Sequence record: NC_061444.1
Direction: 5' to 3' (one strand)
DNA: 64,000 nt
In this document: positions 36,975 through 55,701 of the stretch, in pieces
How positions within the stretch are numbered: the first letter of the stretch is position 1
How the letters are laid out: every line of letters begins with the position of its first letter
The notes under the pieces: generated by a model
What the model saw: only the letters and a program-made list of their open reading frames with translations
Database searches by the model: none
What the model was told of the DNA's origin: nothing
Made by a program: the position numbers and the translations under genes

Positions 36975-37022
36975 TCTACCCAATAGTAGCAGCGCTCACG
37001 GGTGCTGCACAGGAGAAACATT

Positions 37023-40538: not shown

Positions 40539-40674
40539 CAATCCAGTTTGGCTCGCCCGTCCAAAATGCTCACCCCCAATGAGGCGCCCTCGCAGAGGCG
40601 TGACGGTGCGGGTCCTTTTTAGAGCGTATCTTTAGTGCGTTGCAGAAAGAACCCAAAACAAACAGGAGGCTGTT

Positions 40675-41136: not shown

Positions 41137-41348
41137 TGGGAAGATCGACGCAAGACGAAATCAACGGTCAGATAGCTGCCTCCGAAGAGCAACGTTATAA
41201 TGAGCAAATCGCTCAATACGACGACTGGACAGACGACGAGCTGGCTGACGCTGTAGAAGCTAATGAGCTTGTGCGTGATGACGAAGACGCAAGCGACTAC
41301 AGCCGCGAAGCGCTGATTCGAATGCTTATAGCAGATCGACGCTTCTAA
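41136..41348 (+). CDS. small acidic HeH-like protein (70 aa)
   Basis: TGATG overlap; YDDWTDDELADAVEANEL...REALIRMLI. Confidence 0.75.
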   Translation: MGRSTQDEINGQIAASEEQRYNEQIAQYDDWTDDELADAVEANELVRDDEDASDYSREALIRMLIADRRF

Positions 41349-41357
41349 GCAAAAATC

Positions 41358-41402
41358 TGGACAAAATGAGGGTTGTATCAGAATAGCACCCTAAGCTATA
41401 CT
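41358..41402 (+). promoter_or_regulatory. phage promoter cassette copy 9
   Basis: TGGACAAAAT at 41358; AGC-TATACT at 41397 (39 nt offset). Confidence 0.8.
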
Positions 41403-41408
41403 ATATAG

Positions 41409-41600
41409 ACAGTGAGACACGTTCTCTCTGCTATATGCCTTTGTTAATGCTTGACCGTGTGTTTTTCGTTTTCCCGGACACACGGTCCTTTTTAAAGTCG
41501 CTTCCTGTGAGGCTGCTTTAAAAAGGGTTCGATACCCTTTGAGCGCACCGGGCTTTACGCGGTTTCCGCCTTGTGTGCTCTCATGCTAAACCGCAAAGGA
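41409..41600 (+). ncRNA. candidate structured leader or small RNA with four hairpins including a T-loop-like TTCGATA
   Basis: Stems 41453-41487, 41489-41524, 41522-41540 and 41541-41580 downstream of promoter copy 9. Confidence 0.4.
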
Positions 41601-41607
41601 AATAGAT

Positions 41608-42336
41608 ATGCCAAACTTACGTGCTAAACCAGAAGACAAATTCTCTAAAGCTCGTTCTGCGAAGAACTCACCTGAACGTCAGGCTGCTGCTGAGAAGAAA
41701 CGCACAACCCCACGCGGTCCGTCTTCTGCTAAACCTCGTCAGTTGCCGCCGGGCTATGGCTATAAGTCAAAAGCTACAGGCGAACGTGCGCCAGAGCGTG
41801 ACGAAAGAGAATCCCAGAAACCTAATCTGAGTAAGAAAGAATGGGTTGCTCGTCGTGACGCAACGCCGAAGCTGCGTGATGAAGAACGTGTGTATTTTCT
41901 TGTACACGCAATCTTATCAGCGTGGAAGTTGAGTGCATCTACCGATGCTGATGCAAATGCTACAGGCATCATCAAAGTGTCTCGTCGTAAAGTTGAAGGC
42001 GCCTTGCGTGATCTCAAGAATACGCGCTTCACTAAGATACCGACGCTCATTAACGACGTCCTCGTGTATAACGAAGTCTGCAATGAGTTTGGGCAGTGGG
42101 TGTATGTCGAGCATGACAGTCCGGATTGGATTTTCGTGCGCCTTCCGAAAAACAGCACGCCTGTGATTCGCGCAGATATCGCAGTTGACAGAACAGGCGA
42201 AACGCCTACCACTGTAACAACCTCAAGTGAGGTGCTGTTGGATAACGGCGGTGACGACGAAGACGAGATTCCTGAAAACGTCGAATATGACGACGAAGAC
42301 GAATCTCATGTACAGGAAGAAGAGGACGAAGAATAA
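41608..42336 (+). CDS. hypothetical protein, basic N-terminus and acidic C-terminus (242 aa)
   Basis: AAGGA SD. Confidence 0.85.
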   Translation: MPNLRAKPEDKFSKARSAKNSPERQAAAEKKRTTPRGPSSAKPRQLPPGYGYKSKATGERAPERDERESQKPNLSKKEWVARRDATPKLRDEERVYFLVHAILSAWKLSASTDADANATGIIKVSRRKVEGALRDLKNTRFTKIPTLINDVLVYNEVCNEFGQWVYVEHDSPDWIFVRLPKNSTPVIRADIAVDRTGETPTTVTTSSEVLLDNGGDDEDEIPENVEYDDEDESHVQEEEDEE

Positions 42337-42785
42337 TGACCTCTTCAATTCGCCCCGCAGCCGAAACTGCTGCAATGATCATCGAAAACGTTTCTCTTTA
42401 TTCGCAGGAGAAGTCGCACGAGCACACGCTACCGCGCTTCAAAATGTCAGACACCGCGATACGCCGCATATCTGGGCATTCGCGTCTGCTGCCTGAGAGT
42501 TATATCGAACAACTCACCGTCGAGCTACAGCAACTTGATTGGTTGATGGCACGATATGACGCTGGCATGTTTATCTTCATGTCGTATGAAGTGGCAAAGA
42601 ACTGGACGACACTGAGCGCGAAACGTGTTGTACCTAACGACGAGCCTGCGTCTGAGTATGATACGTGGACGTTGCCTGAGCTACAGGGGTTCGCTCAACG
42701 TAACGACTTCTTACAGCCTGACGAAGAGGGCTTCAACGATAGAGCGTCACTTGTGCGAGCTATCATGAGAGGCGAGACTCACTAA
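42336..42785 (+). CDS. hypothetical protein with C-terminal HeH-like domain (149 aa)
   Basis: TAATG overlap; YDTWTLPELQGFAQRNDF...RASLVRAIM. Confidence 0.8.
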   Translation: MTSSIRPAAETAAMIIENVSLYSQEKSHEHTLPRFKMSDTAIRRISGHSRLLPESYIEQLTVELQQLDWLMARYDAGMFIFMSYEVAKNWTTLSAKRVVPNDEPASEYDTWTLPELQGFAQRNDFLQPDEEGFNDRASLVRAIMRGETH

Positions 42786-42846
42786 GCAATAACGAGCAGG
42801 GGGCTGAAATATAGCTGCCCTGCTATCTGCGAAGTATGCAGAAATC

Positions 42847-42891
42847 TGGACAAAATCGTGGTTGCTATCTGAAAGCGACCTATGCTATAAT
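42847..42891 (+). promoter_or_regulatory. phage promoter cassette copy 10
   Basis: TGGACAAAAT at 42847; TGC-TATAAT at 42886 (39 nt offset). Confidence 0.9.
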
Positions 42892-42948
42892 AGATACAGA
42901 CGCAATAGTGCGTCACAAACAAAACACATATACTGAGGAGTATTAATC

Positions 42949-44550
42949 ATGGCACGTATCGAAACTAACTCTAACCTGGTTGGCAAAACTATCATCCTGC
43001 TGAACGGCACCAAATCTAAAATCGAAGATGCTATCGCGTCCGGCTACAAGGTGAAAGGTCAGAGCAAACGTATCGCAACCCGCTGTGTTATCAAAGAGGG
43101 ATCTCACTTCCGTGAAATCGAGCGCATGAACATGAGCCAGCTTGAAGATACCGGCGAAGGTTACGTCAAGCTGAAAGAAGCGAAAGCGTCCGTCAAGAAA
43201 ACTACCGGCAAGAAAGACGCAGTGAAAGAGAAAGCGCCTAAGACTTCTGGTAAGAAGACTGGCGGCAAAGTCTCGAAAGAGAAAGAACCGAAAGTTCGTC
43301 GTAAATCTTCCGAAGAGCAGTCCGAAGATTATCAGAATCTGGCACACGCTATCATCAAAGGCGGCAAAGCTAAACCCGCAGTTGAAATCGAAACTGTAGA
43401 TGAAGCGCTGACCGATACTGTGGCAAAACGTCTGGTGGCGCTGCTTGAAAACAGCGAAATTGCGAAAGTGTGTGCAGACAACAAAACGCCGATCGCTAAC
43501 GCTGTGTCTGTTGCTTACGGTGCTGAGTACGCCGAAGAGAACAACACAATGCAGATCACGTTGAGCCTGCAATACGCGAAGCCTGTGAAAGACACTGCTG
43601 TTGCTCCTGAGCTGGATGAAGCTGTTGCGAAACGTGCCGCCAAGCTCGCGTCTAAGAAGATTGGCAAAGTGCTGGCGAAAGCAATCAAAGCTGCGTTCGA
43701 CCTCGAAGATGCGAACGACCTGCTGCCGGGCACTGTACTGACTTCTGACGGTGCTGAGTTCGTGTTCGTGGGTGAGTCTGCGAAACACGCTGGCAAAGCG
43801 CTGATGTATAGCGCAGACACTGATAGCTTCAAATCATTCGGCGCCGACAAGCTGTCCGACTTCGAAATCGTCGCTGATGAAAGCGAAGAAGAAGAGGAAG
43901 AAGTCGAAGAAGAGGAAGAAGAAGTCGAGGAGGAAGAGGAAGAAGAAGAAGCCGAAGAAGAAGAAGACGGCGAAGAAGAAGACGGCGAAGAAGAAGAAGG
44001 CGATACGCAAGAATACGAGTTCGTTGCTGTCGAAGCGGAACAACTCGAACTGGTCAACAAGAAAGTGACCGCTAAGTATCACGCTGCACTCGCCGAACGT
44101 TTCGGTGTAGACGAAGAAGCGCTTGCCCCTGGCCTGATGCTGACTGACGGCGATACGACTTTTGCTTACCTGGGCTGCGATAGCAAAGGCGGGCTGCTGG
44201 TAATCGACGTTGACGCAGAAGACGAAGACGACAACGTTCTGGTCTACAGCAAAGCTGATATCAAAACGCTGACCGACTTTAGCCCTGTGATCGATAGCGG
44301 CGAAAGCGAAGAAGACGCCGAAGAAGAAGACGGCGAAGAAGAAGAAGATAACAACGTTGACTTCGAAGACGAAGAGGGTGAAGAAGAAGAAGACGAAGAA
44401 GAAGACTTCGAATTTGACGACGCACCAACCGAAGACCTCGAAGACCTGACCGAAGACGAACTGCGTGATCGCGCTGTTGAAGCTGGTCTGACTACGCCGC
44501 GCAAAGCAGACAAAATGACTGCTGCCCAGCTGCGTAAACTCCTGAAGTAA
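42949..44550 (+). CDS. multidomain protein: SH3-like N-domain, Lys-rich linker, two repeated modules separated by poly-Glu, C-terminal HeH-like domain (533 aa)
   Basis: TGAGGAG SD; repeats L.PG..LT.....F..(V/L)G; LEDLTEDELRDRAVEAGL. Confidence 0.9.
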   Translation: MARIETNSNLVGKTIILLNGTKSKIEDAIASGYKVKGQSKRIATRCVIKEGSHFREIERMNMSQLEDTGEGYVKLKEAKASVKKTTGKKDAVKEKAPKTSGKKTGGKVSKEKEPKVRRKSSEEQSEDYQNLAHAIIKGGKAKPAVEIETVDEALTDTVAKRLVALLENSEIAKVCADNKTPIANAVSVAYGAEYAEENNTMQITLSLQYAKPVKDTAVAPELDEAVAKRAAKLASKKIGKVLAKAIKAAFDLEDANDLLPGTVLTSDGAEFVFVGESAKHAGKALMYSADTDSFKSFGADKLSDFEIVADESEEEEEEVEEEEEEVEEEEEEEEAEEEEDGEEEDGEEEEGDTQEYEFVAVEAEQLELVNKKVTAKYHAALAERFGVDEEALAPGLMLTDGDTTFAYLGCDSKGGLLVIDVDAEDEDDNVLVYSKADIKTLTDFSPVIDSGESEEDAEEEDGEEEEDNNVDFEDEEGEEEEDEEEDFEFDDAPTEDLEDLTEDELRDRAVEAGLTTPRKADKMTAAQLRKLLK

Positions 44551-44636
44551 TCTGTCGTAACACTGTAACACTGAAACAAGATGCGGTTCATACGGAGCCG
44601 CATCTCTGACAACTAAGCTGATTGAGGAATCACACT

Positions 44637-45872
44637 ATGTCAAACGCAAATGCAAACCTGTTGAATGCCCGTGTTCGTCGTCTGGACGGTACTATCACTT
44701 TCATCAACAAAGTGAACGCTAATGGTTATAGCACCGACGCGAAAGGTCCGCAAATTCCAGTTAGGCGTATCGTGCTTGCGGGCAAAACGCTGAAAGAGAT
44801 TGAAGCGCCGTTAGCGAAAGCTGAACACGTTCTGATTGACGGTATCACTGTGAAACTGAACAAGCGCCAGCAGAAAGACTTGCTCAACGACGAGATCGAC
44901 CTCGACACGATCAAGCCAGACTTTAGCTCTCTGGTGTATATTGACCCTGAGACAGGCAAGCCTGCTGCTGTGAAAGCTGCGAAGCAGAAAGGCGGTGTGA
45001 AAGCGACACGCGAACGCAACAAAGACACTCGCTCTAAGAAAGAGCGTAAAGCAGAAGTCGCCGCGTCTAAAGACGAAATCGACATGCTGCCGTCTGATAA
45101 AGTTGATCGCAAAGCTGAACTGGCGGGCATCATCGACGCAACCATCGCCGACGCGACTACGAAAGACCGTCGCAAGATGTTGAGCGAAGCGTTTGACATG
45201 GACTGGAAAGATGTGAAGAAGCATGGCGGTAAGGGTGTGATTAAGCACATGGGACGCAAAGCTGCACAATCTGCCATGAACAAACTGAACGCGACCGTGA
45301 CGCAAGACACGTTCATCAAGCAGATGCCTATCGCGCTGAAACGTCTGATTCAAGACGGTGCGTTGACGCTGAACAAAGCGCAGATTGAGCGCGTACTGAG
45401 TGCGCTTGACCTCGACGTGAAATTCTACGACGTTGCGATGCAAACGCTGCTGGGTAATCTCAAGCTGTCACTCGACAAATCTATTGAGAACCCGAAAGTG
45501 AAAGAGAAGAAAGCGAAGCGCAAACTTGCTGTGCCGACCTACGCTTCTGAGAAAGAACAGACCAAGCGTGTGCGCAAAATGACTATCAAACTCATTAAGC
45601 CGCCTAAGAAAGAAATGGCCGCAGCGAAAGCGCACATAAAAGAATCGAAAGCAATCATCGCCAAGAAGCTGGGCATTGCACCTGCTGATGTGAAGCGTGG
45701 TCTGCTCTGCTATAAACCGAACGGTGTTGAACTGATGTTCGTCGCGTGTGACATGACCGGCCCTGTCTTCATCGAGAAAGACGGTAGCGAATGCGTAATG
45801 GCACATGCCAACGTGCAAGACACCTTCAACCTGACCTTGGGTACTAACTCTGAACTGGATGCTGCTGTATGA
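44637..45872 (+). CDS. Lys-rich paralog of 42949-44550 (411 aa)
   Basis: GAGGA SD; shared N-terminal L.GT...I....A.GY........I..R.....G....EIE and one C-terminal module. Confidence 0.9.
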   Translation: MSNANANLLNARVRRLDGTITFINKVNANGYSTDAKGPQIPVRRIVLAGKTLKEIEAPLAKAEHVLIDGITVKLNKRQQKDLLNDEIDLDTIKPDFSSLVYIDPETGKPAAVKAAKQKGGVKATRERNKDTRSKKERKAEVAASKDEIDMLPSDKVDRKAELAGIIDATIADATTKDRRKMLSEAFDMDWKDVKKHGGKGVIKHMGRKAAQSAMNKLNATVTQDTFIKQMPIALKRLIQDGALTLNKAQIERVLSALDLDVKFYDVAMQTLLGNLKLSLDKSIENPKVKEKKAKRKLAVPTYASEKEQTKRVRKMTIKLIKPPKKEMAAAKAHIKESKAIIAKKLGIAPADVKRGLLCYKPNGVELMFVACDMTGPVFIEKDGSECVMAHANVQDTFNLTLGTNSELDAAV

Positions 45873-46252
45873 CAAATAACGAAATCCTTTTGTCAGGCAT
45901 GTTTGCTCAACTCTACGCGCGGCTGTTAACAGCCGCAGTATTGAAGACCCACGTGTTCTACTCTGACTTAGCGCCGATTGTGTTCGGCGTTCAACTGTCT
46001 GTGATTAGTAGTGCGCAGTACGATGCGCTGTGGGGATTAGTGCGCGAAACCATGCGTGTCGATATATCGCATGGCAGACCACCGCTTGCTGCACTGTATG
46101 TATCACGGGCCACCGATAGTAAACTGCCCGCTAAGAAATTCTTTCGTGAGTACCACAAGCTCACGGGCAAGCATTTGTCAGAAACTGAATGGCAAGCACT
46201 CGTCGAAAATGTGTGGAACAGCTATGCACCAAATCTTCGGGAGCCATCATGA
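45869..46252 (+). CDS. putative winged-helix (ATL/MGMT-like) DNA-binding protein
   Basis: VFYSDLA...RPPLAALYV....LP.K.FF pattern. Confidence 0.5.
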   Translation: MTNNEILLSGMFAQLYARLLTAAVLKTHVFYSDLAPIVFGVQLSVISSAQYDALWGLVRETMRVDISHGRPPLAALYVSRATDSKLPAKKFFREYHKLTGKHLSETEWQALVENVWNSYAPNLREPS

Positions 46253-46710
46253 AAAAGTCAAAAGTAGTAATTAGTCGCGGCGGCTACAGGCCGTCATCGC
46301 AAGAAGAAGCACAAAAGCTGATAGCTGAATTTATTCTTGGTACTATCGGCGTTGACCCTACTGTTATCAGTCAGCAAATGCTGTTGAACATTGCTAACTA
46401 TAATTACCTGACGTCTATCGCAGACACTGGCAAAGCAAATGCAGCGAACCAAGCTGCGTTGCACAAAACTGTAAAAGAACTTAATGCGTTCTGTAGAATG
46501 CACAAGATATCGCTGGGTTTACTAATTATGCCCCATACTTCTGCTAGTGATTATGCTGGCGACGAGGTTGTAGCGATTCCTTGGGAGCATGTGCAGAAAA
46601 ACGCATTGAGCCAGTCGGCCATCGACTCCCTGTTCAAAACAGTTGAAGCAGATGGTTACCCGCAGTTTGTGACTGATGCGAAAACAGTAGAGGGATACAA
46701 TGTTTTATGA
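46249..46710 (+). CDS. hypothetical protein (153 aa)
   Basis: GGGAG SD; ATGA overlap. Confidence 0.8.
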   Translation: MKKSKVVISRGGYRPSSQEEAQKLIAEFILGTIGVDPTVISQQMLLNIANYNYLTSIADTGKANAANQAALHKTVKELNAFCRMHKISLGLLIMPHTSASDYAGDEVVAIPWEHVQKNALSQSAIDSLFKTVEADGYPQFVTDAKTVEGYNVL

Positions 46711-47980
46711 TCATGTATTCAGCCACGACGAGAAGCAATTGCTCTTGTCAGTGGCTGAGTCTAAATATTTGGTGAGACTTGACTGCCCCGATTATTTGAA
46801 GAAGTCTAAACACGCGATTGAGATTCGCCACACTGTGACGAACCGTGGTGAGCAACGTCGTACTGGTACGATAACAACTGCGTTCGTACCGCGTATTCAT
46901 TCTGCGACTGTGCAGCGCCTTGTGCGTGATGTGCGTGACTCTGCAACAAAGAGTTCGTCTGACAGTCTCGCTGCGTTGTTTGAGCTTGGCCTTGGTGTGC
47001 CGAAGCAACACGATATCGCAGTGTACCTGAAAGACTACTCGCGTGAGAACGATAAGAAGGGTGTGGGTATCAAGTATATCCGCAAACTGATTAACGAATA
47101 TCACCGCAAGCATCGTCATAGCTTCGCCGGTAGTCGCTGGCTGATGCCCGCTGCGTACACTGCGAACATGCTCAACATGCAATCTTTCATTCATCTGAAA
47201 GAAGACGGCTACTCGAAGAAACTGAAAGTTCCTGAAGGTGTGCCTGTCGTGTTCATCTACCAGAACACGAATCATGAAAAAGCAACGTTCACGATGTGCG
47301 ACGCATTCATGATAAGCCCGCTCGGTTATCCGATGCCGTTTGCGCAGGTAGCGTTACGACCTGAGTTCAAAGCTGCACCGAAAGAGTTCAAGTCGAAAGC
47401 GCTGCGTGGCAAAAGCATGTACGCTATGGTCATGGGCATTGTCTACTGGGAAGAAGGAAGTGCAATTGACAACTTCCGTGAGTTGCAAGCAATCGACGAC
47501 GACCCGTATCTGACGCTGCTTAGTGACGAGAAGTACGCAGACCGCCGCTCACCTGAGTATCAAGAGCTGCTGGACAAACGTGCTGAACTGAACGAGCGAG
47601 CGAAACACTGGAACGAGATCGTATCGAAGTATGGCAAGACAACGCGCACTCTCAAACCCGAACAAGCGGAGAAGTTAGAGAAAGCTGAGGCGTTCTTCAA
47701 AGAGCGCAAAGAGTTCATGGACGACTTCGACAAGTTCGAAAAGAAAGAAAACCACAAAGCTGCGAAGAAGTTCGCTGCTGCGAAAGCGCTGTTTGCTGCT
47801 GTCGATTGTGGCACTATCATGGACCGCACCACGTACATGTCAGTGTCGTCTGGGCTTGACGATGTGAATAAGATACTCACTACGTGGGGATTCACGACCG
47901 TCAATACTGTTAATGCTAGTTTGAAGAAGTCTATCCTTACATACGACCGTAAAAACGCAAGCCGCGTCTGGTCTCTGTAA
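46700..47980 (+). CDS. hypothetical basic protein (426 aa)
   Basis: GAGGG SD; long ORF. Confidence 0.9.
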   Translation: MFYDHVFSHDEKQLLLSVAESKYLVRLDCPDYLKKSKHAIEIRHTVTNRGEQRRTGTITTAFVPRIHSATVQRLVRDVRDSATKSSSDSLAALFELGLGVPKQHDIAVYLKDYSRENDKKGVGIKYIRKLINEYHRKHRHSFAGSRWLMPAAYTANMLNMQSFIHLKEDGYSKKLKVPEGVPVVFIYQNTNHEKATFTMCDAFMISPLGYPMPFAQVALRPEFKAAPKEFKSKALRGKSMYAMVMGIVYWEEGSAIDNFRELQAIDDDPYLTLLSDEKYADRRSPEYQELLDKRAELNERAKHWNEIVSKYGKTTRTLKPEQAEKLEKAEAFFKERKEFMDDFDKFEKKENHKAAKKFAAAKALFAAVDCGTIMDRTTYMSVSSGLDDVNKILTTWGFTTVNTVNASLKKSILTYDRKNASRVWSL

Positions 47981-48007
47981 ACCACTTATCTGAGGAGATA
48001 ACGCAAA

Positions 48008-51000
48008 ATGTCAAATAACAATCTGGGCGCTGCATCATCATTTGGTTCCGAAACACAAAAGCAGATCAGCGACGAACAGCGTCGTGCTAATTCTGCCGAA
48101 AGCGGTCGTGTGAACAAATGCACAATCGTCGTCCTGACTTCACTGAATGCTCATGGTCGCTTCTCGTATATGAGCGCCGACGAGCAACTGCACGAAAAGC
48201 AGATTGAAGGCAAGGTAATGGATCGTCTGCCGAGCCTGATCGAACGTGCCTCTGGTCAGTCTACCGATCAGAACAGCGCGTACTACATCCTGCACCCTAA
48301 CAACGGTGTGCCGACTCGCATTGACGAGCGCATCAAAGTGGGTGAAGGTGATGCCGTCATCGTTTCATATACTGTAAATAAAGCAGTATCTGAGATGCAC
48401 GGTAGTCTGTCTCTCGCACTGTTTAGTGCAGGCGAAAGCGATCTGTCAGACTTGGCAGCCGAGTTTGGGATTCACTCAATCTCGATTGTTGAAGAAAGCA
48501 AAGCAGGTACTTACATTCAGGCACTCGCCGCTCAGGTGGAAGCTCTGCAAACTGTAAATATCACAAGCATTGATGAAACTGATGGTGCTCTCGATAAAGC
48601 GGTAATTGACTACAGCGCGTTGCCAGCTAACCCTGTTACTGTGCTGTCTGGTGCTGTGCGTACTTTCATCATGCAAACTATTAGCAGCGAGATCGTTGCT
48701 GCAATTCCAAATAACGGAGAACTGAACGTGAAACAACCTACCAACGCAACGCCTGTAAACCTGAGCGAAGACTTCGACGCAGAAGACGAAGTTGTTGATC
48801 AGCAGGAAGCGGGTGACGAAGAAGAAGTTGCGACCGGCACTGACCTGTTCGGCTACAAAGCTGAAACGCTGTCTGTTGAGCAAATGACCGAAGCGCTCGA
48901 AGCGATTGGTTATGATCTGACTGCAATGAACGAAGACGGTATTCGTGAGTCGTTCGACACCGAGCAAGCAATCTGGCTGGAAAAAGGCGATGCCGGTCAG
49001 AGCGACGATGACGCAGAAGACGAAGAAGAAGACGACGAAGAAGAAAGCGAAGGCTTCGACGCTGTTCAATTCCTCGCTTCTGTTCTGGTCTCCGAAGAAC
49101 TGGATCGTACCGGTCTGAAAATTCTTGTTCGCACCCAGGATCTGAAAGTCATGAAGTCTGATACTGTCGAGACTCTGACTGCCAAACTGCTGGAGCTGGT
49201 TGAAGGTGCGACCGAAGAAGAGATGATCGAAACTCTGAACACCTTCGTTGGCGCTCTGCAAGAGCACGAAATCGACTGCCCGAACATGCTGGCAGCTCTG
49301 CCGTCTGATGAAGACGAAGAAGAAGAAGACGACGCCGACGAAGAAGACGGCGAAGAAGAAGAGGACGAAGACGATTCTGAGGAGGAAGATGAAGACTCCG
49401 AAGAAGAGGAAGAGTCCGAAGAAGAAACCGACGAAGTGCAAGACCAGATCGATGCAGTAACTGATCCGCTTGACTACTTCCAGTTCACCGGCGGTGTGCT
49501 GACTGCTGAACAACGTGCCGCCGCTGTTGAAGCGATGGGCGAAGATGTATCTGCAATGTCTATCGTTCAGGTAATGAAAGCGTTCACCCGCATTCAAAGC
49601 CAGACCAGCCCTATCGCTGTTGAAGAAGACACTGACGTGACTTCTAACGAAGACGAACTCCGCGCTCTGCTGTCTCAGTACGACGAAGCGACCGTGCAGC
49701 ACGTAGCTGAAAGCCTGGGCATCCTCGTTGACGAAAGCGAAACTGTTGACGACATGATCGAAGCGATCCTCAACGGTGGTAGCGAAGACGACTTTGCTGC
49801 TGTCGAAGAAATCGCAACTAACTACGGTATCGACCTGTCCGAAGTTGCAGACGGTGAAGACCTGGACTTTGTTGACGCGCTGCTGGCCGTACTCCCTGCG
49901 TTCCTGAACGACGACGAAGTTGCCGATCAGGATGAAGACGAAGAAGAAGACGCCGAAGAGAGCGAAGACGAAGAAGCAGAAGAAGCAGACGTTAGTGCTG
50001 TTGCTGAAAACGATCATCTGAAATTCGTCAAAACTGTTGACACCACCAATCGCGTTGGCCCGATGCTGACTGTCGATATGGACCAGACGCTGATCATCAA
50101 CTTCACTCTGACCGACGGCAACACGTACTCGCCGATTGAAAGCGAACTGTCTGACATTAACGGCTTCAACTACCGCTACCCGTTCAACCTGGGCAAAGCT
50201 GGTAAAGCGCCAGGCGCGATGCACCTGCCAGCGCAGTCTCTGCTGGATATCATTGAGCGCACCAGCACTACGCGCTTCATGGCAGACCCGAAAACGTTCG
50301 ACGTTGCTGCCTGGGCTGAAAGCCTTGAGCAAACTCTTGAAGAAGAAATCTCTGCTTCTCTGTACGCCGGCCGTATCGAAGAAGGCATGGACCCAAGCGA
50401 AGCGGGTCTCGTAGTTGGTGACTTCATCGACGACGAAGAAATGCAGCAAGCGAGCGAGCTGGGTTATCTCGACGAAGATCAGTTCGCAGAAATGCAGGGC
50501 GATCATCTGCCGATTGCAAGCCTGTACAACGCTAAGTCTCGCGTTCGTCCTGTTCAGGTTGACACTGCACACGTTGCGCTGCACACCACTGTGATGAACG
50601 TTGCTGTCCCTGGCTTCTGGGGTGACTCCGATGTTTCTCTGCTGGTGCAAGCCGCTGTTAATCGTGTTATCGCTCTGGCCGGTACCGTTGAAGGTATCAA
50701 AGTGTACGCAGGCTTCACTCTGGAATCCGCAGCACTGCTGAACAACGACCGCCTGTACGATGCACTGACCGCGCTGCGCACTATGGAAGGCGTACAGTCT
50801 TACTCTGCCGCTGACGCTGCAAACTTCGACGATGCCGAAGACGTGATCGAAGTAGCAAGTGCTCTCGACACCCGCGACCTGCCGCTGTCTATTCTGTCTG
50901 GTGGTCTGGCTGCTGCAACGTTCGACAATGGCGGTGACCTGACTGTTCTGGTACTGTGTTCTCCTCAGGAAGAAGAATCCGAAGAGAACGAAGACGAAGA

Positions 51001-51016
51001 CGGCGAAGACGAGTAA
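48008..51016 (+). CDS. very acidic 1002-aa protein with several HeH-like repeats
   Basis: TGAGGAG SD; poly-D/E runs; LSQYDEATVQHVAESLGI...DDMIEAIL and ELDRTGLKILVRTQDL...ETLTAKLL. Confidence 0.92.
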   Translation: MSNNNLGAASSFGSETQKQISDEQRRANSAESGRVNKCTIVVLTSLNAHGRFSYMSADEQLHEKQIEGKVMDRLPSLIERASGQSTDQNSAYYILHPNNGVPTRIDERIKVGEGDAVIVSYTVNKAVSEMHGSLSLALFSAGESDLSDLAAEFGIHSISIVEESKAGTYIQALAAQVEALQTVNITSIDETDGALDKAVIDYSALPANPVTVLSGAVRTFIMQTISSEIVAAIPNNGELNVKQPTNATPVNLSEDFDAEDEVVDQQEAGDEEEVATGTDLFGYKAETLSVEQMTEALEAIGYDLTAMNEDGIRESFDTEQAIWLEKGDAGQSDDDAEDEEEDDEEESEGFDAVQFLASVLVSEELDRTGLKILVRTQDLKVMKSDTVETLTAKLLELVEGATEEEMIETLNTFVGALQEHEIDCPNMLAALPSDEDEEEEDDADEEDGEEEEDEDDSEEEDEDSEEEEESEEETDEVQDQIDAVTDPLDYFQFTGGVLTAEQRAAAVEAMGEDVSAMSIVQVMKAFTRIQSQTSPIAVEEDTDVTSNEDELRALLSQYDEATVQHVAESLGILVDESETVDDMIEAILNGGSEDDFAAVEEIATNYGIDLSEVADGEDLDFVDALLAVLPAFLNDDEVADQDEDEEEDAEESEDEEAEEADVSAVAENDHLKFVKTVDTTNRVGPMLTVDMDQTLIINFTLTDGNTYSPIESELSDINGFNYRYPFNLGKAGKAPGAMHLPAQSLLDIIERTSTTRFMADPKTFDVAAWAESLEQTLEEEISASLYAGRIEEGMDPSEAGLVVGDFIDDEEMQQASELGYLDEDQFAEMQGDHLPIASLYNAKSRVRPVQVDTAHVALHTTVMNVAVPGFWGDSDVSLLVQAAVNRVIALAGTVEGIKVYAGFTLESAALLNNDRLYDALTALRTMEGVQSYSAADAANFDDAEDVIEVASALDTRDLPLSILSGGLAAATFDNGGDLTVLVLCSPQEEESEENEDEDGEDE

Positions 51017-51029
51017 TAACGTCTGATTG

Positions 51030-51056
51030 AGCGGCTCGAAAGGGCCGCTTACTTTT
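51030..51056 (+). terminator. probable terminator
   Basis: AGCGGCTC-GAAA-GGGCCGCT-TACTTTT. Confidence 0.7.
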
Positions 51057-51073
51057 CCTGGGGATCTGTAAAC

Positions 51074-51901
51074 ATGACACAAGAAGTAGACCACGGAGCT
51101 AACATCGCGCAGATGCTTAGTAGCCGTGACGATAAAATTCGTGAGCTTACTGCCGAACTGGCGGAGGCTGTTGGCGATAAGAAAGACGTGGAAAACGTTT
51201 TAGAGAATGAGACACGCAGTAACACTATCCTGCGTGTTGCACTTCAACGTCAAGACCGTCTGCACACCGATACCATTGCTTTACGTGACGAGCGTATCAA
51301 AGAACTTGTTGGATTCTGCAATGAGCAGACACAAGAACTTCGCACCGTGAAAGCTGAACTCGAATCTGTAAAGAGTAAGCACGAAGCAGCGAACCCGCTT
51401 CCGTTTGCTCTGCATATGATAATGTGTGCTGGTGTTAGTCACTACCACAATGTCGTTATGCAACTCGCACACGGTACTGTAAACCGTGAAACGAACAAGG
51501 TTGCTCGCGCACTCGCCGAGCAGAACAAGATTGACACCGTGATTAAACAGCCTTCGCTGTATCGCTCTGTCGCAATGTACTGCTCTGCCATTAACGCAGA
51601 TACACCTAAGGGTGAAACGCTGCGTGAAGCGCTTAAAGCCTACATCGAAGCGAACGTTAACCTGTTCTTGAAAGACCCGCAGTTCGAAGTGTCTCGCACG
51701 ATGTTGAAGCATGTGTGGGAAGCGCATAGGAAAGCGGCTCACATGGGCAGTGGTGCGCGTAACATCTGCTACTCATTCGACTGGCTGCGTGTTGCAGTTG
51801 TCGATGATATCGAAACACTGGAAGAAGACGACGAGTATGAAGAATTATTCTGCGAATCGCTTCTCACGATTTGTTTAGATTTGATTAATCATAGCTTTTA
51901 G
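51074..51901 (+). CDS. coiled-coil hypothetical protein (275 aa)
   Basis: N-terminal heptad pattern. Confidence 0.85.
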   Translation: MTQEVDHGANIAQMLSSRDDKIRELTAELAEAVGDKKDVENVLENETRSNTILRVALQRQDRLHTDTIALRDERIKELVGFCNEQTQELRTVKAELESVKSKHEAANPLPFALHMIMCAGVSHYHNVVMQLAHGTVNRETNKVARALAEQNKIDTVIKQPSLYRSVAMYCSAINADTPKGETLREALKAYIEANVNLFLKDPQFEVSRTMLKHVWEAHRKAAHMGSGARNICYSFDWLRVAVVDDIETLEEDDEYEELFCESLLTICLDLINHSF

Positions 51902-51912
51902 AAATCTGTAAA
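51901..51912 (+). promoter_or_regulatory. GAAATCTGTAAA motif (exact copies at 52585, 52642, 59387); candidate late/middle promoter
   Basis: Exact 12-mer four times, all at gene boundaries; resembles T4 late TATAAATA. Confidence 0.6.
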
Positions 51913-51996
51913 AGTTACCTGTAATCGAAACTGTAAACACTAATTGAAGTTCGAACCGAGCAACTAGCTCACACTTATAAATCCCGGAGCATTACA

Positions 51997-52551
51997 ATGG
52001 CTAAAGCAACAAAGAGCAATTCACTGGTACCTACTCTGGCACAGCGTATCGCTAAGAAATCTGGTTCTATCAGCACCTCTAAAGTTAAGCCTGCTGAACT
52101 GCCGCACGACATCCTGATCGAAAGCGTCCACGCCGTTGAGCTGATTGGTTTTATCACTGACCGCACCGACAACAGCGTAACTATTCGTCACAAACGTGGT
52201 CACGGTTCTTCTGCTCAGATCGTTTCTACTTTCGGTCCGAACCAGATTCTGTCTGTTCTGGGTGAAGCCGGTACGCACGGTAGCGTTACTGCTCTGATCT
52301 CTGCTCCGATTCGTGAGTACAAAGGCTTCACTGTTAAGTACGTTGGTAACTTCATCCACGCTACTTCTGTTGAAACCGGCGAAGTTGTTCAGATCAACAC
52401 CGCGCTGCCAGGGTACACCGTTCGTCCGACCGTGAACGAAACTGCCGCTGCTAAAAAGTACGGCACTGCCGCTCCAGTTAAAGCCAAGAAAGCTGACAAA
52501 GCTGAAAAAGGCGGTAAGCCAGCCAAGCTGGTAAAGAAAGCAAAAAAGTAA
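51997..52551 (+). CDS. basic protein with possible Sm/SH3-like barrel and Lys/Ala tails (184 aa)
   Basis: GGAG SD; high-expression codon bias; ILIESVHAVELIGFITDRTDNSVTI. Confidence 0.85.
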   Translation: MAKATKSNSLVPTLAQRIAKKSGSISTSKVKPAELPHDILIESVHAVELIGFITDRTDNSVTIRHKRGHGSSAQIVSTFGPNQILSVLGEAGTHGSVTALISAPIREYKGFTVKYVGNFIHATSVETGEVVQINTALPGYTVRPTVNETAAAKKYGTAAPVKAKKADKAEKGGKPAKLVKKAKK

Positions 52552-52584
52552 TAAAGTCTGACGAAGACTTTTAACTGACTTTCT

Positions 52585-52653
52585 GAAATCTGTAAATATT
52601 AAGTACGCAGCGAGATAAAATGTTCTCGCTGCCTGTCTCTCGAAATCTGTAAA
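52585..52653 (+). promoter_or_regulatory. two GAAATCTGTAAA motifs upstream of 52701 gene
   Basis: 52585-52596 and 52642-52653. Confidence 0.6.
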
Positions 52654-52700
52654 TCTTAATTGAAGCAACGTCGCTTCTAATCAAACAGGAAAAACAAATC

Positions 52701-53501
52701 ATGGCTAAAGCTGCTAAAGCAACCGTTAACACCGCATCTCTGGTTCTGGCTAAAATGCTGGGTGTCGTAGTAGAGAACGCAACCGACAAAGAAATCGCTG
52801 CGCTGCTCGCATCTGCCGGTCTGACCGTGTCTGGTGGTAAAGTTGTTAAAGCTGACAAAGGCGGTAAAGCTGCTAAAGGCAAAAAGGCCAAAGCACCTAC
52901 CGTCGCTGAAATCGTCGCTGCTGTGAAGGACGAAGAAGAACTGGACATCTCCGGCGTTGACGAAGACACCCTGCGTGAAGCGGTTGTCAAAGCCAAACTG
53001 TCTACCGCCAAGAAAGCTAAAGCGCTGGACGAAGAAGAACTGCGCGAACTGCTGAACGACAACCTGGGCGGCGAGTCCGAAGAGGACGAAGACGACGAAG
53101 AAGAAGAGGACGAAGACGAGGACGAAGAGTCAGAAGACGAAGACGGCGACGACGAAGACGAAGACGACGAAGACTCTGATGATGAAGAAGAGGACGACGA
53201 AGACGACGAAGACGGCGACGACGAAGATGAAGACGACGAAGACGAAGATGAAGACGAGGACGAAGATGAAGACGAGGATGATGAAGACCTCGATCTCGAC
53301 TCCCTCGACGAAGACGAACTTCGCGCTCTGGTAATCGAACACAAGCTGGCCGCCGCTAAAAAGGCGAAGAAAATGGACGAAGATGAACTGCGCGAACTCT
53401 GCGAAGAACACTTCGGTGGTGAAGACGACGAAGACGACGAAGACGAAGACGAAGACGACGAAGACTTCGACGACGAAGACGAAGACGAAGACGACGAGTA
53501 A
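52701..53501 (+). CDS. hyperacidic protein with two HeH-like domains separated by ~70-residue poly-D/E run (266 aa)
   Basis: AGGA SD; ISGVDEDTLREAVVKAKL...LDEEELRELL and LDSLDEDELRALVIEHKL...MDEDELRELC. Confidence 0.9.
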   Translation: MAKAAKATVNTASLVLAKMLGVVVENATDKEIAALLASAGLTVSGGKVVKADKGGKAAKGKKAKAPTVAEIVAAVKDEEELDISGVDEDTLREAVVKAKLSTAKKAKALDEEELRELLNDNLGGESEEDEDDEEEEDEDEDEESEDEDGDDEDEDDEDSDDEEEDDEDDEDGDDEDEDDEDEDEDEDEDEDEDDEDLDLDSLDEDELRALVIEHKLAAAKKAKKMDEDELRELCEEHFGGEDDEDDEDEDEDDEDFDDEDEDEDDE

Positions 53502-53604
53502 TAGCTTCTGATCCGGCGCGCCCCTCTAGTTCTGATGAATGAGCGAGGGGCAAATATTCGATAAAAAAACTTTCGAATATTTTTGTAAAAAGTTTCAAAA
53601 TTTC

Positions 53605-53633
53605 TTGCAGACGTATGTTGATTATAATAATGT
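53605..53633 (+). promoter_or_regulatory. sigma70-like promoter with upstream A/T tracts and flanking inverted repeats
   Basis: TTGCAG-N17-TAATGT (overlapping TATAAT at 53623); A/T tracts 53553-53603. Confidence 0.55.
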
Positions 53634-53719
53634 ACGTCTACAGGAAATCAAACCTGAACAAATTTATCTTTTCATCCAGCGGTGAAAACGCCGCATCAAA
53701 TATAAAGTAAGGATCTACC

Positions 53720-54244
53720 ATGACTAAGAAAATCATTAGCGGCCTGAACAAAGAAGTTAAAGCCATCTCTAAATCTGAGAACGCTCTGGACAAAACCATT
53801 GCATCTCTGACTGCTGAGAAAGCTAACCTGGCTGCACGCCGTGAAGGTATCACCGCTCAGGTTGAAGCGCTGTCTGGCGAAGCTGCTGCTCCGGCTAAAG
53901 CGCCGAAAGCTGCTAAAGCGAAAGCTGAAAAACCTGCTAAAGCAGACAAAAAAGCAAAAGCTGAAAAGCCTGCTAAAGCTGAAAAAGCTGGCAAGAAAGC
54001 TAAAGCAGAAAAACCTGCTAAAGCTGAGAAAGCAGACAAAAAAGCAAAAGCTGAAAAACCTGCTAAAGCAGACAAAAAAGCAAAAGCTGAAAAGCCGGCC
54101 AAAGCTGATAAAAAAGCTAAAGCTGAAAAAGCTGGCAAGCCTGCTAAAGCAGACAAAGCCGCCAAGAAAGTGAAAGGCGACAAAAAAGCGAAAGCTGGTA
54201 AGCAGAAAAAAGAATCCGAAGACTTCGACTTCGAGATGGAATAA
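53720..54244 (+). CDS. histone H1-like/AlgP-like basic protein: N-terminal coiled coil, KAEKPAKA repeats, acidic-aromatic tail (174 aa)
   Basis: AAGGA SD; ~5 KAEKPAKA(EKA)DKKA units; ends ESEDFDFEME. Confidence 0.85.
   Translation: MTKKIISGLNKEVKAISKSENALDKTIASLTAEKANLAARREGITAQVEALSGEAAAPAKAPKAAKAKAEKPAKADKKAKAEKPAKAEKAGKKAKAEKPAKAEKADKKAKAEKPAKADKKAKAEKPAKADKKAKAEKAGKPAKADKAAKKVKGDKKAKAGKQKKESEDFDFEME
53885..54170 (+). repeat. tandem coding repeats (K-A-E-K-P-A-K-A units)
   Basis: Recurring GCTAAAGC..GAAAA.CCTGCTAAAGC. Confidence 0.95.
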
Positions 54245-54277
54245 GCAAGTAATCGCGCACTAGCGGTCACTTGATCG

Positions 54278-54309
54278 AAAGGGCAGCGCTGACGAGCGTT
54301 TGCCCTTTT
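54278..54309 (+). terminator. intrinsic terminator
   Basis: AAAGGGCAGCGCT-GACG-AGCGTTTGCCCTTTT. Confidence 0.8.
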
Positions 54310-54342
54310 GTCATATCTATACGATTTTTTGAGGTATTCTTT

Positions 54343-54837
54343 ATGTCCGCCGAACATCTGCTTAATGACGACCTGCTTGACGATACTCTCCCTGCCAAAA
54401 CATCCCCCAAACAAGATAAGCCGAGCTACTACGAGCTAATGTCTATGCGCTTAGAAGCTGGCGCACGTCTTGCCCGCTCTCTCAAAACGTTACGTGATGC
54501 TAACGTTCTCCCTGCATCTGGCTCTAACCCAACTTCTCTCGCTACTGCACTTGAAATAGCCGAACGCTACTTCGCTGATATCTGCATGGGTGTAGTTCCA
54601 GTCAGAAGCGGATCTGACGTGTCTACAATCACAATGCGCGAAGACCTTCCTGCGTGTGTCGAAGCGTTTCGTATTGTTGTTATGGAACATGCTCAACGTG
54701 AAGCCCTTGAGCGTGCGTGTCGCAACATGATTGCTGACGGTAACGGCTTCAAGATTCTCACTCAGCCTCAAGTGCTGCACCTCGAAAACAAACACGTCTG
54801 TAACGGAGACTGCGATCATGGCTCAGAAACTGTCTGA
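54343..54837 (+). CDS. hypothetical protein (164 aa)
   Basis: GAGGT SD before ATG 54343. Confidence 0.8.
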   Translation: MSAEHLLNDDLLDDTLPAKTSPKQDKPSYYELMSMRLEAGARLARSLKTLRDANVLPASGSNPTSLATALEIAERYFADICMGVVPVRSGSDVSTITMREDLPACVEAFRIVVMEHAQREALERACRNMIADGNGFKILTQPQVLHLENKHVCNGDCDHGSETV

Positions 54838-55567
54838 ACAAATCCACCGCTATTTTAATCTCATGGAGAAAATCCGTGAGCAAATGTACTGCGTCCTGCC
54901 TGTATCTAACCGATACCTGTGCATCGTAAGTTTCAGCACACAGCTCCAGGCCCTTCAATGTGTACTGGTAAACAAAGAAAGCCTTATGGAAGCAAAGCTC
55001 ATTGAGGGGCTGACTGGTCAGGAATTGATTACGTATGGCCAGTACAGACGAACTGCCGAAGAGTGGGTTGCTAATGGTATGCAAGACGACTATCCATTCA
55101 CACAGGATAAAGATGTGTATGCAGAGTACCGCAGCCTGACACGCGACGAACAATCTCAGCCGGAAATCGACGAGGACGAAGAAGACGAAGAAGACCTCGA
55201 CGTGCAAGAGATGGACAATCTGCGTACCTCAATTCTCTGCGCCGACAAAGCCACACTGATGCAGATGTTTGCCGACGAAGGCTTAGGCACAAAAGGAACT
55301 GCTGCCGATATGGATGTGGGTCAGTTGCAGGATGCTCTGTGTGATCATTATGGACTCAACCCAGATGTTGACGTTAAAGTTGTTGACGTTGTTGGTGAGC
55401 TGGTTGAGCGTTTAGAAAACATGCCTAAGCACAAAGCTCTCGAAGAAGCGCATCACCTGACAAAAGAGGAACTGCTCAGTCTCGCAGACGCATGGGGGAT
55501 TGAGAAAGACGCACACGAAAGCACAATGCGCTCTCTGATTAAAGGTCACATACTGCGCCGCTCTTAA
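54818..55567 (+). CDS. hypothetical protein with acidic linker and two HeH-like domains (249 aa)
   Basis: GGAG SD; DKATLMQMFADEGL...MDVGQLQDALCDHY and HLTKEELLSLADAWGI. Confidence 0.85.
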   Translation: MAQKLSEQIHRYFNLMEKIREQMYCVLPVSNRYLCIVSFSTQLQALQCVLVNKESLMEAKLIEGLTGQELITYGQYRRTAEEWVANGMQDDYPFTQDKDVYAEYRSLTRDEQSQPEIDEDEEDEEDLDVQEMDNLRTSILCADKATLMQMFADEGLGTKGTAADMDVGQLQDALCDHYGLNPDVDVKVVDVVGELVERLENMPKHKALEEAHHLTKEELLSLADAWGIEKDAHESTMRSLIKGHILRRS

Positions 55568-55586: not shown

Positions 55587-55630
55587 TGGACAGAATGCGG
55601 GTAGCGTCTAATACATAAGTGTGATATAAT
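55587..55630 (+). promoter_or_regulatory. phage promoter cassette copy 11
   Basis: TGGACAGAAT at 55587; TGA-TATAAT at 55625 (38 nt offset). Confidence 0.8.
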
Positions 55631-55701
55631 AGCGTAAGACAAGTAGTGTCTGAACTTGCTAATATCGAGTAGTAACGCTACTCATTTAGGAGAATACCAA
55701 A

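Follow-up and report, generated by a model that had tools for sequence, protein, structure and literature searches.

Genes gp316 to gp329 of the Erwinia jumbo phage pEa_SNUABM_32 (NC_061444.1), every one labelled "hypothetical," form a conserved module of highly charged proteins specific to one jumbo-phage lineage. We tentatively read this island as an abundant intracellular polyelectrolyte set that may act on DNA during replication. The region analyzed, hereafter the window, is the terminal 64 kb of the genome. A preliminary description of its sequence had delimited the same ORFs as a hyper-acidic and hyper-basic island next to the topoisomerase II (topo II) genes. The ORFs coincide with the annotated genes, the charges are as extreme as claimed (Table 1), and topo II lies directly downstream, with gp330 starting at 55702. 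The island is located in the early/replication arm of the genome, outside the structural block. In an ORF census covering 264 kb of the genome, three of the five proteins with the greatest negative charge, and the one richest in D+E, were encoded by the island. Acidic proteins are also found upstream (gp312, gp314 and gp315, but not gp313, which is set among them, according to the charge table), and gp315 and gp317 have similar C-terminal motifs (blastp E value of 2.7e-4). Pfam, PDB and Foldseek searches revealed no enzyme fold and no family match for the island proteins, weak Pfam coiled-coil matches of gp324 excepted, and none yielded a recognizable DNA-binding domain. The winged helix-turn-helix proposed earlier for gp320 found no support in Pfam or PDB profiles, and the coiled coil proposed for gp324 was not confirmed, as it corresponds to those weak matches only.

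Table 1. Features of the island and its borders (positions in the window)
Feature	Position	Strand	Remarks
gp312, gp314, gp315	39676..41348	+	Upstream acidic extension; net -32, -35 (Cys cluster) and -13, respectively (charge table)
Intergenic region	41349..41607	+	Class-A promoter motif, then terminator-like hairpin and tRNA T-arm-like stretch
gp316	41608..42336	+	Basic, disordered-looking N-terminal part; acidic C-terminal tail (18 D/E per 30 residues)
gp317	42336..42785	+	149 aa; PHROG 26231 (no function assigned)
Class-A promoter	42846..42891	+	CTGGACAAAAT ... TATGCTATAAT; 5' of gp318; type as at topo II
gp318	42949..44550	+	533 aa; net -76; 27% D+E
gp319	44637..45872	+	Basic; pI 9.7
gp320	45869..46252	+	127 aa; conserved in NCTB
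gp321	46249..46710	+	153 aa
gp322	46700..47980	+	426 aa; basic (+14); conserved-core member
gp323	48008..51016	+	1002 aa; net -192
Terminator-like GC hairpin	51028..51051	+	3' of gp323
gp324	51074..51901	+	275 aa; coiled-coil-like N-terminal region; weak Pfam coiled-coil matches only
Two class-B motifs	51905..51950	+	TCTGTAAA / CTGTAAACACTAATTGAAG; 5' of gp325; kept in Y3, Yoloswag, Yen9, NCTB
gp325	51997..52551	+	pI 10.1
Two class-B motifs	52589..52665	+	5' of gp326; 2-4 copies kept at orthologues
gp326	52701..53501	+	266 aa; net -99; 47% D+E; top codon bias in window
Inverted repeat	53600..53648	.	16-nt arms, 17-nt gap
gp327	53720..54244	+	174 aa; net +26; 30% K+R; pI 10
gp328, gp329	54343..55567	+	164 aa; 249 aa, net -25
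gp330 and class-A promoter	55620..57729	+	Topo II large subunit gene (context)

The AF2 model of gp323, the most negative member (mean pLDDT of 74), comprises a folded N-domain (residues ~35 to 240), four helical modules and a folded C-domain (~668 to 985), with disordered, low-confidence acidic linkers between the folded modules, and it has no PDB fold match. This protein has 34 homologues among 5.8 billion proteins, and hhalign shows a distant relationship between its C-domain and the shorter acidic proteins encoded at the syntenic position in PaBG and NCTB (E value of 4e-5, probability 70%). In gp318, a small N-terminal domain and a C-terminal two-helix motif are accompanied by a Lys-rich linker, a helical region, poly-Glu tracts and two small beta modules; the protein has orthologues in NCTB (E value of 1e-24) and the metagenome contig L016 (5e-12). 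On the N-terminal side of gp326, a short helical part is followed by a Lys-rich linker; about 80 residues of poly-D/E separate its two two-helix motifs, and its acidic tail bears an invariant EDFDDEDEDEDD motif. The two-helix motif is conserved and common to gp318 (1 copy), gp326 (2) and gp329 (one or two). Its earlier designation as an HeH tether was not confirmed: it falls under the Pfam thresholds for SAP, HeH, LEM and Rho_N (best SAP E value of 1e-3 over 13 residues), has no PDB match, and is absent from gp323.

Among the basic members, gp325 is the most widely conserved protein of the island, with 63 representative clusters among 1.84 billion proteins. Its AF2 model shows an all-beta core (residues 37 to 146, pLDDT above 90) between a basic disordered N-tail and a Lys-rich disordered C-tail; Foldseek returned no significant PDB match, the best being a tandem SH3b-like domain (E value of 0.07). 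The N-terminal domain of gp319 is paralogous to that of gp318 (blastp E value of 2.9e-4), and the gp319 profile matches gp318-like proteins of NCTB and L016, but gp319 is devoid of acidic tracts. Both gp319 and gp325 had been called Lys/Ala-rich; they are moderately basic with Lys-rich tails, but not Lys/Ala-rich overall. No fold or family match was obtained for gp322.

The gp327 protein has three parts: a conserved N-terminal part of 53 residues that is helical and coiled-coil-like, a Lys/Ala/Pro tail with the repeat (AEKPAKADKKAK)n, and, at the C terminus, the acidic-aromatic tip DFDFE, in which both Phe are invariant. Similar D-F-D tips, invariant Phe included, recur at the C termini of several acidic and basic members. 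With their long Lys/Ala/Pro repeats, gp327 and its orthologues resemble linker histone H1 and the bacterial H1-like proteins AlgP, the C-terminal domain of PhaF, chlamydial Hc1/Hc2 and the mycobacterial HupB/MDP1 tail; the repeat units (that of gp327, and APAKPARGKKAE in NCTB) are like the DNA-condensing tails of H1-like proteins, and the helical part ahead of the repeats is reminiscent of PhaF. Unlike H1-type proteins, gp327 lacks a winged-helix globular domain and matches neither the Linker_histone nor the phasin family of Pfam, its tail contains ~15% acidic residues, and its tip is conserved. The previous H1-like label describes its composition and not a linker-histone domain, and its DNA binding is putative.

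Gene order, lengths and net charges of the island are kept across phages of five enterobacterial genera, and the proteins of Y3, Yoloswag, JA29 and fHe-Yen9-02, at 31 to 70% identity, have retained both net charge and length. A core set (gp318-like, gp322-like, gp323-C-like, gp325-like, poly-D/E, and Lys/Ala/Pro-rich proteins) is found again, at about 20 to 30% identity, in PaBG, the marine phage NCTB and uncultured contigs. In NCTB, PaBG, L016 and L020, the gene after the gp325-like one codes for a protein with 44 to 67% D/E; in L014 and L018, where the contigs end, acidic ORFs that are truncated take this place. Downstream of the D/E protein comes a protein that combines a coiled coil with Lys/Ala/Pro sequence. 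DNA-metabolism genes adjoin the module in every lineage, but topo II is not universal, as PaBG has sigma/SSB/RecA genes instead. Selection at the protein level, argued earlier from mixed GAA/GAG/GAC/GAT codons, is borne out by this conservation of charge and length, by single-codon runs not exceeding 4 in the island, and by tandem-repeat arrays that, except for a few very short ones, are imperfect (63 to 85% matches). The D and E codons are indeed interleaved, but their usage is uneven (GAA 82 to 84% versus a background of 58%; GAC up to 86%).

Strong codon bias, another early claim, was confirmed by scoring the share of E. coli-type optimal codons in the 89 window genes. The gp326, gp327, gp325, gp323 and gp318 genes ranked 1, 2, 3, 4 and 6, with fractions of 0.64 to 0.76 compared with a median of 0.49. 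In this respect gp325, gp326 and gp327 equal the major capsid protein (0.73), suggesting that they are made in stoichiometric, not catalytic, amounts, and the island is apparently very highly expressed.

The promoters and terminators attributed to individual genes were upheld only as phage-specific motifs, since consensus scans for sigma-70 promoters (12 versus 11.8 expected) and terminators (18 versus 20.2) were not above chance. Several island genes are preceded by such conserved motifs. The early, sigma-70-like class-A motif occurs upstream of gp316, gp318 and topo II; the class-B motif occurs upstream of gp325 and gp326 and likewise of the DNA polymerase, clamp loader and SSB genes, and its conservation at orthologues extends to NCTB. 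No class-C motif, the type that precedes tail sheath, endolysin and head genes, was found in the island. Upstream of gp327, an inverted repeat spans a promoter-like site (TTGCAG-17-TAATGT); the spacing is conserved, and JA29 carries a compensatory change. The tRNA T-arm-like stretch upstream of gp316 has no tRNA or Rfam match. Judging from motif co-occurrence, we infer early/middle timing for the island.

Promoter classes, capsid-level codon bias, deep charge conservation, synteny, the gp327 tail and the lack of an enzyme fold all fit a DNA-metabolism-linked set. The preliminary interpretation is supported in part, as regards an abundant, non-enzymatic, intracellular charged set; the HeH, wHTH and H1 family memberships on which it drew were not confirmed. 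Its candidate condensate or chromatin role is compatible with the data, and the shell-less compartment, coacervation, histone-chaperone-like action and nuclease protection that it envisaged are putative. At 1:1 stoichiometry, however, the acidic members sum to about -427 and the basic members to about +81. It is therefore not obvious that the island proteins could form a coacervate by simple mutual neutralization, and further cationic partners are required for the acidic ones.

That excess of negative charge, unmatched by the basic proteins of the island, could also mean that the poly-D/E proteins are host-takeover decoys, i.e., disordered DNA or polyanion mimics that would titrate host HU, H-NS, Fis, DNA-binding defense proteins or polyamines and free or collapse the host nucleoid, the basic partners being secondary. 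The early class-A promoter at gp318 and an abundance suited to titration agree with this proposal, which overlaps with the polyelectrolyte reading and differs in its host-side target. Known phage DNA mimics such as T7 Ocr, ArdA and T4 Arn are likewise strongly acidic, early, and potential competitors of DNA for basic surfaces. Those mimics are nevertheless small folded proteins with patterned charge that copy the shape of B-form DNA, whereas gp326, gp318 and gp323 are long, have predicted disordered D/E tracts, of about 80 residues in gp326, and are always accompanied by basic partners. The tight, deeply conserved pairing with Lys/Ala/Pro and basic beta-barrel proteins suggests phage-internal partners, and no similarity to any anti-defense family was found in the Pfam, PDB and Foldseek searches. 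We consider such decoys unlikely, if plausible.

Somewhat less probable is that the island encodes packaged proteins, the basic ones associated with DNA inside the head and the acidic ones serving as scaffold, core or ejected proteins. Against the polyelectrolyte reading, capsid-level codon bias suits a packaged protein equally well, and extreme charge would suit co-packaging with DNA or scaffold expulsion by incoming DNA. Like T4 internal and phiKZ inner-body proteins, the island proteins are apparently abundant, clade-specific, clustered and without assigned folds, in a large phage; phiKZ inner-body genes are clustered, and jumbo phages package many abundant proteins without known function (PMC13282480). 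However, the island differs from structural genes in promoter class, with class-A and class-B motifs common to replication genes and no class-C motif, and in genome arm, and no virion detection is known. The late block already has its own hyper-charged candidates in the census, gp143 (net -132), adjoining the prohead protease, and gp188 (net +65). Island orthologues are not among the 14 identified virion proteins of PaBG (PMC7412058, Table 1), which is weak evidence because that proteome comprises only 14 abundant bands.

Least probable, replisome or transcription accessory factors, whose recurrent tips would recruit or regulate the phage polymerase, topo II or a phage sigma factor as hub adaptors rather than bulk DNA organizers, in the manner of the C-terminal tails of SSB, T7 gp2.5 and T4 gp32, would account for the invariant Phe, the topo II or sigma/SSB/RecA neighbors and the promoter class common to island and replication genes, but adaptors are seldom needed at capsid-protein abundance, and 47 to 67% D/E with net charges near -100 to -200 is far above known acidic tails.

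In the polyelectrolyte reading, non-enzymatic proteins synthesized early and during replication would target DNA or DNA-bound proteins in the infected cell. The gp327, gp325, gp319 and gp322 proteins would use multivalent lysine contacts to bind nucleic acid irrespective of its sequence, gp327 contributing an oligomerizing N-terminal helix and its repeat tail, and gp325 a beta-barrel core between Lys-rich tails. The gp326, gp318 and gp323 proteins, in which disordered D/E tracts connect small folded or two-helix modules, would behave as DNA-like counter-polymers, loading, limiting or stripping basic proteins, possibly including host nucleoid proteins, and the D-F-D tips may serve as docking peptides. 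The pairing of a poly-D/E gene with an adjoining H1-like polycation gene recalls nucleoplasmin/NAP1/SET and the prothymosin-alpha/H1 complex. Acidic tracts with embedded aromatics resemble histone-binding chaperone motifs, in keeping with a candidate load-or-strip function, but there is no nucleoplasmin or NAP fold according to Pfam.

The record annotates no chimallin (ChmA), no PhuZ and no multisubunit phage RNA polymerase, and its taxonomy does not place pEa_SNUABM_32 in Chimalliviridae; the earlier statement that ChmA and PhuZ are missing holds as far as annotation and taxonomy go. Unlike the chimallin nucleus, the module has no shell-forming candidate, yet both would give replicating jumbo-phage DNA an environment of its own. 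For pEa_SNUABM_32 and its relatives, the net result may be that replicating phage DNA is enclosed in a nucleoprotein phase or coat driven by charge.

Every gene from gp316 to gp329 is annotated as 'hypothetical protein' in the record of Erwinia phage pEa_SNUABM_32 (NC_061444.1, 265,891 bp, genus Alexandravirus), of which the window is the final 64 kb; window positions correspond to record positions minus 201,891. Among jumbo myoviruses, this phage is a member of the PaBG/Lu11/NCTB/Dickeya-JA/Y3/Yoloswag/Alexandra group (PMC7412058). The plus-strand arm that carries this gene island also encodes a sigma factor, SSB, a UvsX-like recombinase, and topoisomerase II, and the structural and lysis genes form a minus-strand block at 47-189 kb. 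No chimallin, PhuZ, or multisubunit phage RNA polymerase was found among the annotations of the 336 genes, and the taxonomy of the phage falls outside Chimalliviridae; the lineage of the island appears to be without a chimallin nucleus. Our analyses indicated that the island is real, deeply conserved, and uncharacterised.

The open reading frames and compositions of the island proteins matched those given in the preliminary description (see the table). A census of ORFs covering 264 kb of the genome placed three of the five proteins with the most negative charge in the island, as well as the one with the highest fraction of D+E. At 1:1 stoichiometry, the charges sum to about -427 versus +81, a strongly negative balance, so that further cationic partners are needed. 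C-terminal tips of acidic and aromatic residues, such as DFDFE, EEDFD, DDFDDFDDSDFD, and DDEDFED, occur in several members, among them basic ones. Consistent with the earlier proposal, the acidic tracts did not arise by slippage: no codon recurs more than four times in succession, and the tandem-repeat arrays are imperfect, with 63-85% matches except in a few very short arrays. The mixed D/E codons cited for that proposal stood in part: usage is uneven, as GAA and GAC are strongly favored, together with AAA and GCT, relative to the window background.

We then ranked the 89 genes of the window by their share of optimal codons of the E. coli type. The top three were gp326, gp327, and gp325, in this order, with values of 0.73-0.76, and gp323 and gp318 were fourth and sixth; for comparison, the major capsid protein has a value of 0.73 and DNA polymerase one of 0.42. 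On these ranks, very high expression is predicted. Elsewhere in the window, the annotated SSB, gp248, has an unusual two-sided charge, and the Cys cluster of the acidic protein gp314 suggests a putative zinc-binding ribbon.

Island proteins and other features discussed in the text, with coordinates, size, charge, and composition.
Feature	Coordinates	Length	Net charge	Composition or content
gp318		533 aa	-76	27% D+E
gp319		411 aa	+24	moderately basic, Lys-rich stretches
gp323		1002 aa	-192	24% D+E
gp325		184 aa	+15	moderately basic, Lys-rich tails
gp326		266 aa	-99	47% D+E
gp327		174 aa	+26	30% K+R
Inverted repeat upstream of gp327	window 53600-53648			16-nt arms, 17-nt gap, over promoter-like TTGCAG/TTGTAG-17-TAATGT
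gp248 (annotated SSB)	window 902-2167	421 aa		24% D+E and 24% K+R
gp314	window 40675-41136		-35	Cys cluster CPEC..CDC..CRNC..CEC
gp315	window 41136-41348			C-terminal W-T-x-x-E-L motif
Stretch with putative short early RNA	window 41349-41607			class-A motif, GC hairpin and T-run
gp317	window 42336-42785			C-terminal W-T-x-x-E-L motif
Stretch with single small annotated gene	L005 (same genome) ~36525-37849; record 86525-87849	~1.3 kb		class-B motif at upstream edge
gp143 (annotated 'ATPase')	L006 (same genome); record 108594-110627	678 aa	-132
gp188	L007 (same genome); record 162203-162871	223 aa	+65	32% K+R
Protein following the gp325-like gene of L019	L019 1290-2051	253 aa		Lys/Ala/Pro repeats and acidic D/E/aromatic region

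Relatives of gp322, gp323, and gp327 were found in the same 57 phage records for each protein, from phages of Erwinia, Dickeya, and Yersinia. Y3, Yoloswag, JA29, and fHe-Yen9-02 share the gene order with hardly any change in length or net charge; for example, the charge ranges from -174 to -201 for gp323, from -89 to -100 for gp326, and from +26 to +30 for gp327. Searches of 5.8 billion proteins yielded only 34 homologues of gp323, every one of about 1000 aa, and nothing for the N-terminal 56 residues of gp327. The best marker of the island is gp325, with 63 representative clusters among 1.84 billion proteins, PaBG and NCTB included. The distant gp325-like genes are preceded by genes for two acidic proteins, one gp318-like and one of 355-420 aa, and for a gp322-like basic protein. 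Downstream, where the gene is complete (NCTB, PaBG, the metagenome contig L016, and L020), is a protein of 129-294 aa with 44-67% D/E, followed by a coiled-coil and Lys/Ala/Pro-repeat protein; in L014 and L018 the contig ends within the acidic ORF. In L019, a distant metagenomic relative, a single protein located directly after the gp325-like gene looks like a putative fusion of the gp327 and gp326 roles. The PaBG module adjoins genes for sigma, SSB, and RecA, not topoisomerase II.

Profile searches confirmed the homology of the gp318, gp320, gp322, gp325, and gp327 families, and that of gp326 in NCTB. The enterobacterial gp323 profile missed the shorter syntenic acidic proteins; only profile-profile comparison linked them to the gp323 C-domain, and the relationship is moderate (hhalign E 4e-5, probability 70%). 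As PaBG gp131 was not formally recovered with the gp318 profile, nor the poly-D/E proteins of 129-150 aa with that of gp326, their equivalence is by position and composition only.

Most of the family labels proposed earlier did not withstand profile comparison. The acidic proteins had been described as carrying HeH tethers, but no island protein or orthologue matched the SAP (PF02037), HeH, LEM, or Rho_N Pfam profiles significantly. The best match, of the gp318 C-terminus to SAP, covers 13 residues only (E 1e-3, 19 bits versus a cut-off of 23.9 bits), and there was none at all to these four profiles for gp326, gp329, and gp323 or the PaBG, NCTB, and L016 orthologues. The pattern sought for such motifs, two short helices with an extended linker over about 35 residues and L-x-x-E-L-R ... 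K-x-x-L-I, occurs in gp318, gp326, and gp329 and is conserved there. A profile built from 15 copies of this two-helix motif confined it to those proteins, with two copies in gp326, and did not detect it in gp323; against the PDB its best E was 0.47, with no SAP or HeH structure among the matches. gp315 and gp317 share a different C-terminal two-helix-like motif (blastp E 2.7e-4), distinct from that of gp318 and gp326. The winged-helix label of gp320 fared no better, as this protein has no Pfam family and its profile of six orthologues gave only E 0.41 at best in the PDB, to SpoIIIAB. The H1-like label of gp327 held for its Lys/Ala/Pro-rich disordered C-terminal tail, AEKPAKADKKAK, encoded by imperfect repeats of 18 to 81 nt. 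This tail is common to linker histones H1/H5; their winged-helix globular domain is lacking, since gp327 matched no Pfam family at E up to 1, Linker_histone included, and its orthologues gave only weak coiled-coil-type matches.

More generally, all island proteins and their distant orthologues yielded only unknown-function PHROGs and sub-threshold noise in Pfam and PHROG scans, and no enzyme signature was found throughout the island. PDB searches with profiles of the two-helix motif, gp322, gp325, gp320, and gp319 gave nothing significant, gp319 showing a weak uL24/KOW-like match (E 0.07). The AlphaFold2 model of gp323 (mean pLDDT 74) comprises folded domains at both ends, the C-terminal one alpha/beta, and four helical modules, with low-confidence acidic linkers between them; its modules are of the helix-linker-helix type, which the two-helix motif profile misses. 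That of gp325 shows an all-beta core with pLDDT above 90, flanked by disordered Lys-rich tails. Foldseek comparison of both models with the PDB gave nothing at E below 0.07, with no fold match for gp323; the best matches of gp325, non-significant at E 0.07 or worse, were to tandem SH3-like barrels of CBDP35, Agenet/Tudor, and eIF5A. Only uncharacterised orthologues were found in BFVD. A reading of the N-termini as T4-like capsid-targeting or protease sites was dropped because, by eye, the pattern varied between lineages.

Island genes had also been credited with their own promoters or terminators, but a scan with generic sigma-70 and terminator consensus sequences gave chance-level results. 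Genome-wide comparison of intergenic regions yielded three inferred classes of promoter-like motifs. Class A, GCAAA-CTGGACAAAAT, followed after about 25 nt by an extended -10 element such as TATGCTATAAT, is sigma-70-like and almost confined to the plus-strand arm (190-262 kb); it is found upstream of gp316, gp318, and the topoisomerase II gene. Class B, TCTGTAAATA, always in the coding direction, precedes the genes for DNA polymerase, clamp loader, SSB, and others, with two copies before gp325 and two before gp326. Class C, CTAATTTCA, has 13 of its 14 occurrences in the minus-strand block, upstream of both tail-sheath genes, the endolysin gene, and head-module genes, and none in the island. 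The conserved class-B core also precedes the gp325 and gp326 orthologues of Y3, Yoloswag, fHe-Yen9-02, and even NCTB, and in JA29 the gp326 orthologue only, in four copies, which argues that class B is a real promoter element. The co-occurrence of these motifs suggests early and middle, not late, expression of the island.

gp327 has a conserved control region of its own. The inverted repeat upstream of this gene looks like a putative operator: the spacing of its arms is kept in Yoloswag, JA29, and fHe-Yen9-02, with a compensatory change in both arms in JA29. Ahead of gp316, a class-A early motif is followed about 50 nt on by a GC hairpin and T-run that could mark a short early RNA, and then by a tRNA T-arm-like AGGGTTCGATACCCT; tRNA (ARAGORN) and Rfam scans of the island, including this stretch, found nothing. 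A further stretch, with a single small annotated gene, precedes the PAAR gene of the structural block; besides the class-B motif at its upstream edge, a second one lies about 200 bp beyond that edge, within gp118.

These results fit an abundant, stoichiometric, non-catalytic polyelectrolyte set that acts in the cell during replication. Our best guess is that it works on DNA, a weaker form of the chromatin or condensate system initially proposed. Lys-rich tails would let the basic members coat or bridge DNA, the polyanionic members may load, limit, or displace these proteins or else displace nucleoid proteins of the host, and the D-F-D tips could serve as docking peptides. We group the island with nucleoid-type systems of a polycation and an acidic partner.

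Two other explanations remain alongside this polyelectrolyte set, namely that the proteins are decoys for host proteins or polyamines, or that they are adaptors of the replisome or of transcription. A third, that they are packaged in the head, also remains but is weakened by the promoter classes of the island, which do not include class C (an inferred class found before late structural genes), by its genome arm, and by the absence of the PaBG orthologues gp124-gp131 from its list of 14 virion proteins (PMC7412058); moreover, the structural block has separate hyper-charged proteins under late-type motifs, gp143 and gp188. Both are candidates for a scaffold or head-internal protein, and gp143 sits between the capsid and prohead-protease genes.

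A bolder form of the DNA-directed reading is that, in PaBG/Lu11/Alexandra jumbo phages, the poly-D/E protein and the H1-like Lys/Ala/Pro protein, a dedicated pair of disordered proteins with opposite charge, build a membrane-less, shell-less nucleoprotein phase around the replicating genome together with the basic beta-barrel protein; we regard this candidate as rather unlikely. Such a phase would give bacterial viruses a counterpart to H1/prothymosin or histone/chaperone systems, and another option besides the chimallin nucleus. We are similarly doubtful that the module is a genuinely novel way for phages to organise their genomes. A literature search found no paper on the island proteins, and a 2026 review of the biology of jumbo phages does not use the terms condensate, histone, acidic, or phase separation (PMC13282480).

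For this phage group, the analysis also provides a map of three promoter classes, a gp325-like marker family for relatives in metagenomes, and a short list of proteins for tagging. Should the proteins prove to be packaged or to act as host decoys, they would still represent a new class of phage protein, polyanionic, disordered, and very large. To our knowledge, the chimallin nucleus is the only well-understood intracellular DNA organisation in jumbo phages. Given its deep conservation, the lack of known folds, predicted capsid-level abundance, and promoter motifs shared with the replisome, the island is a concrete candidate, and a genetically tractable one, for another solution driven by charge.
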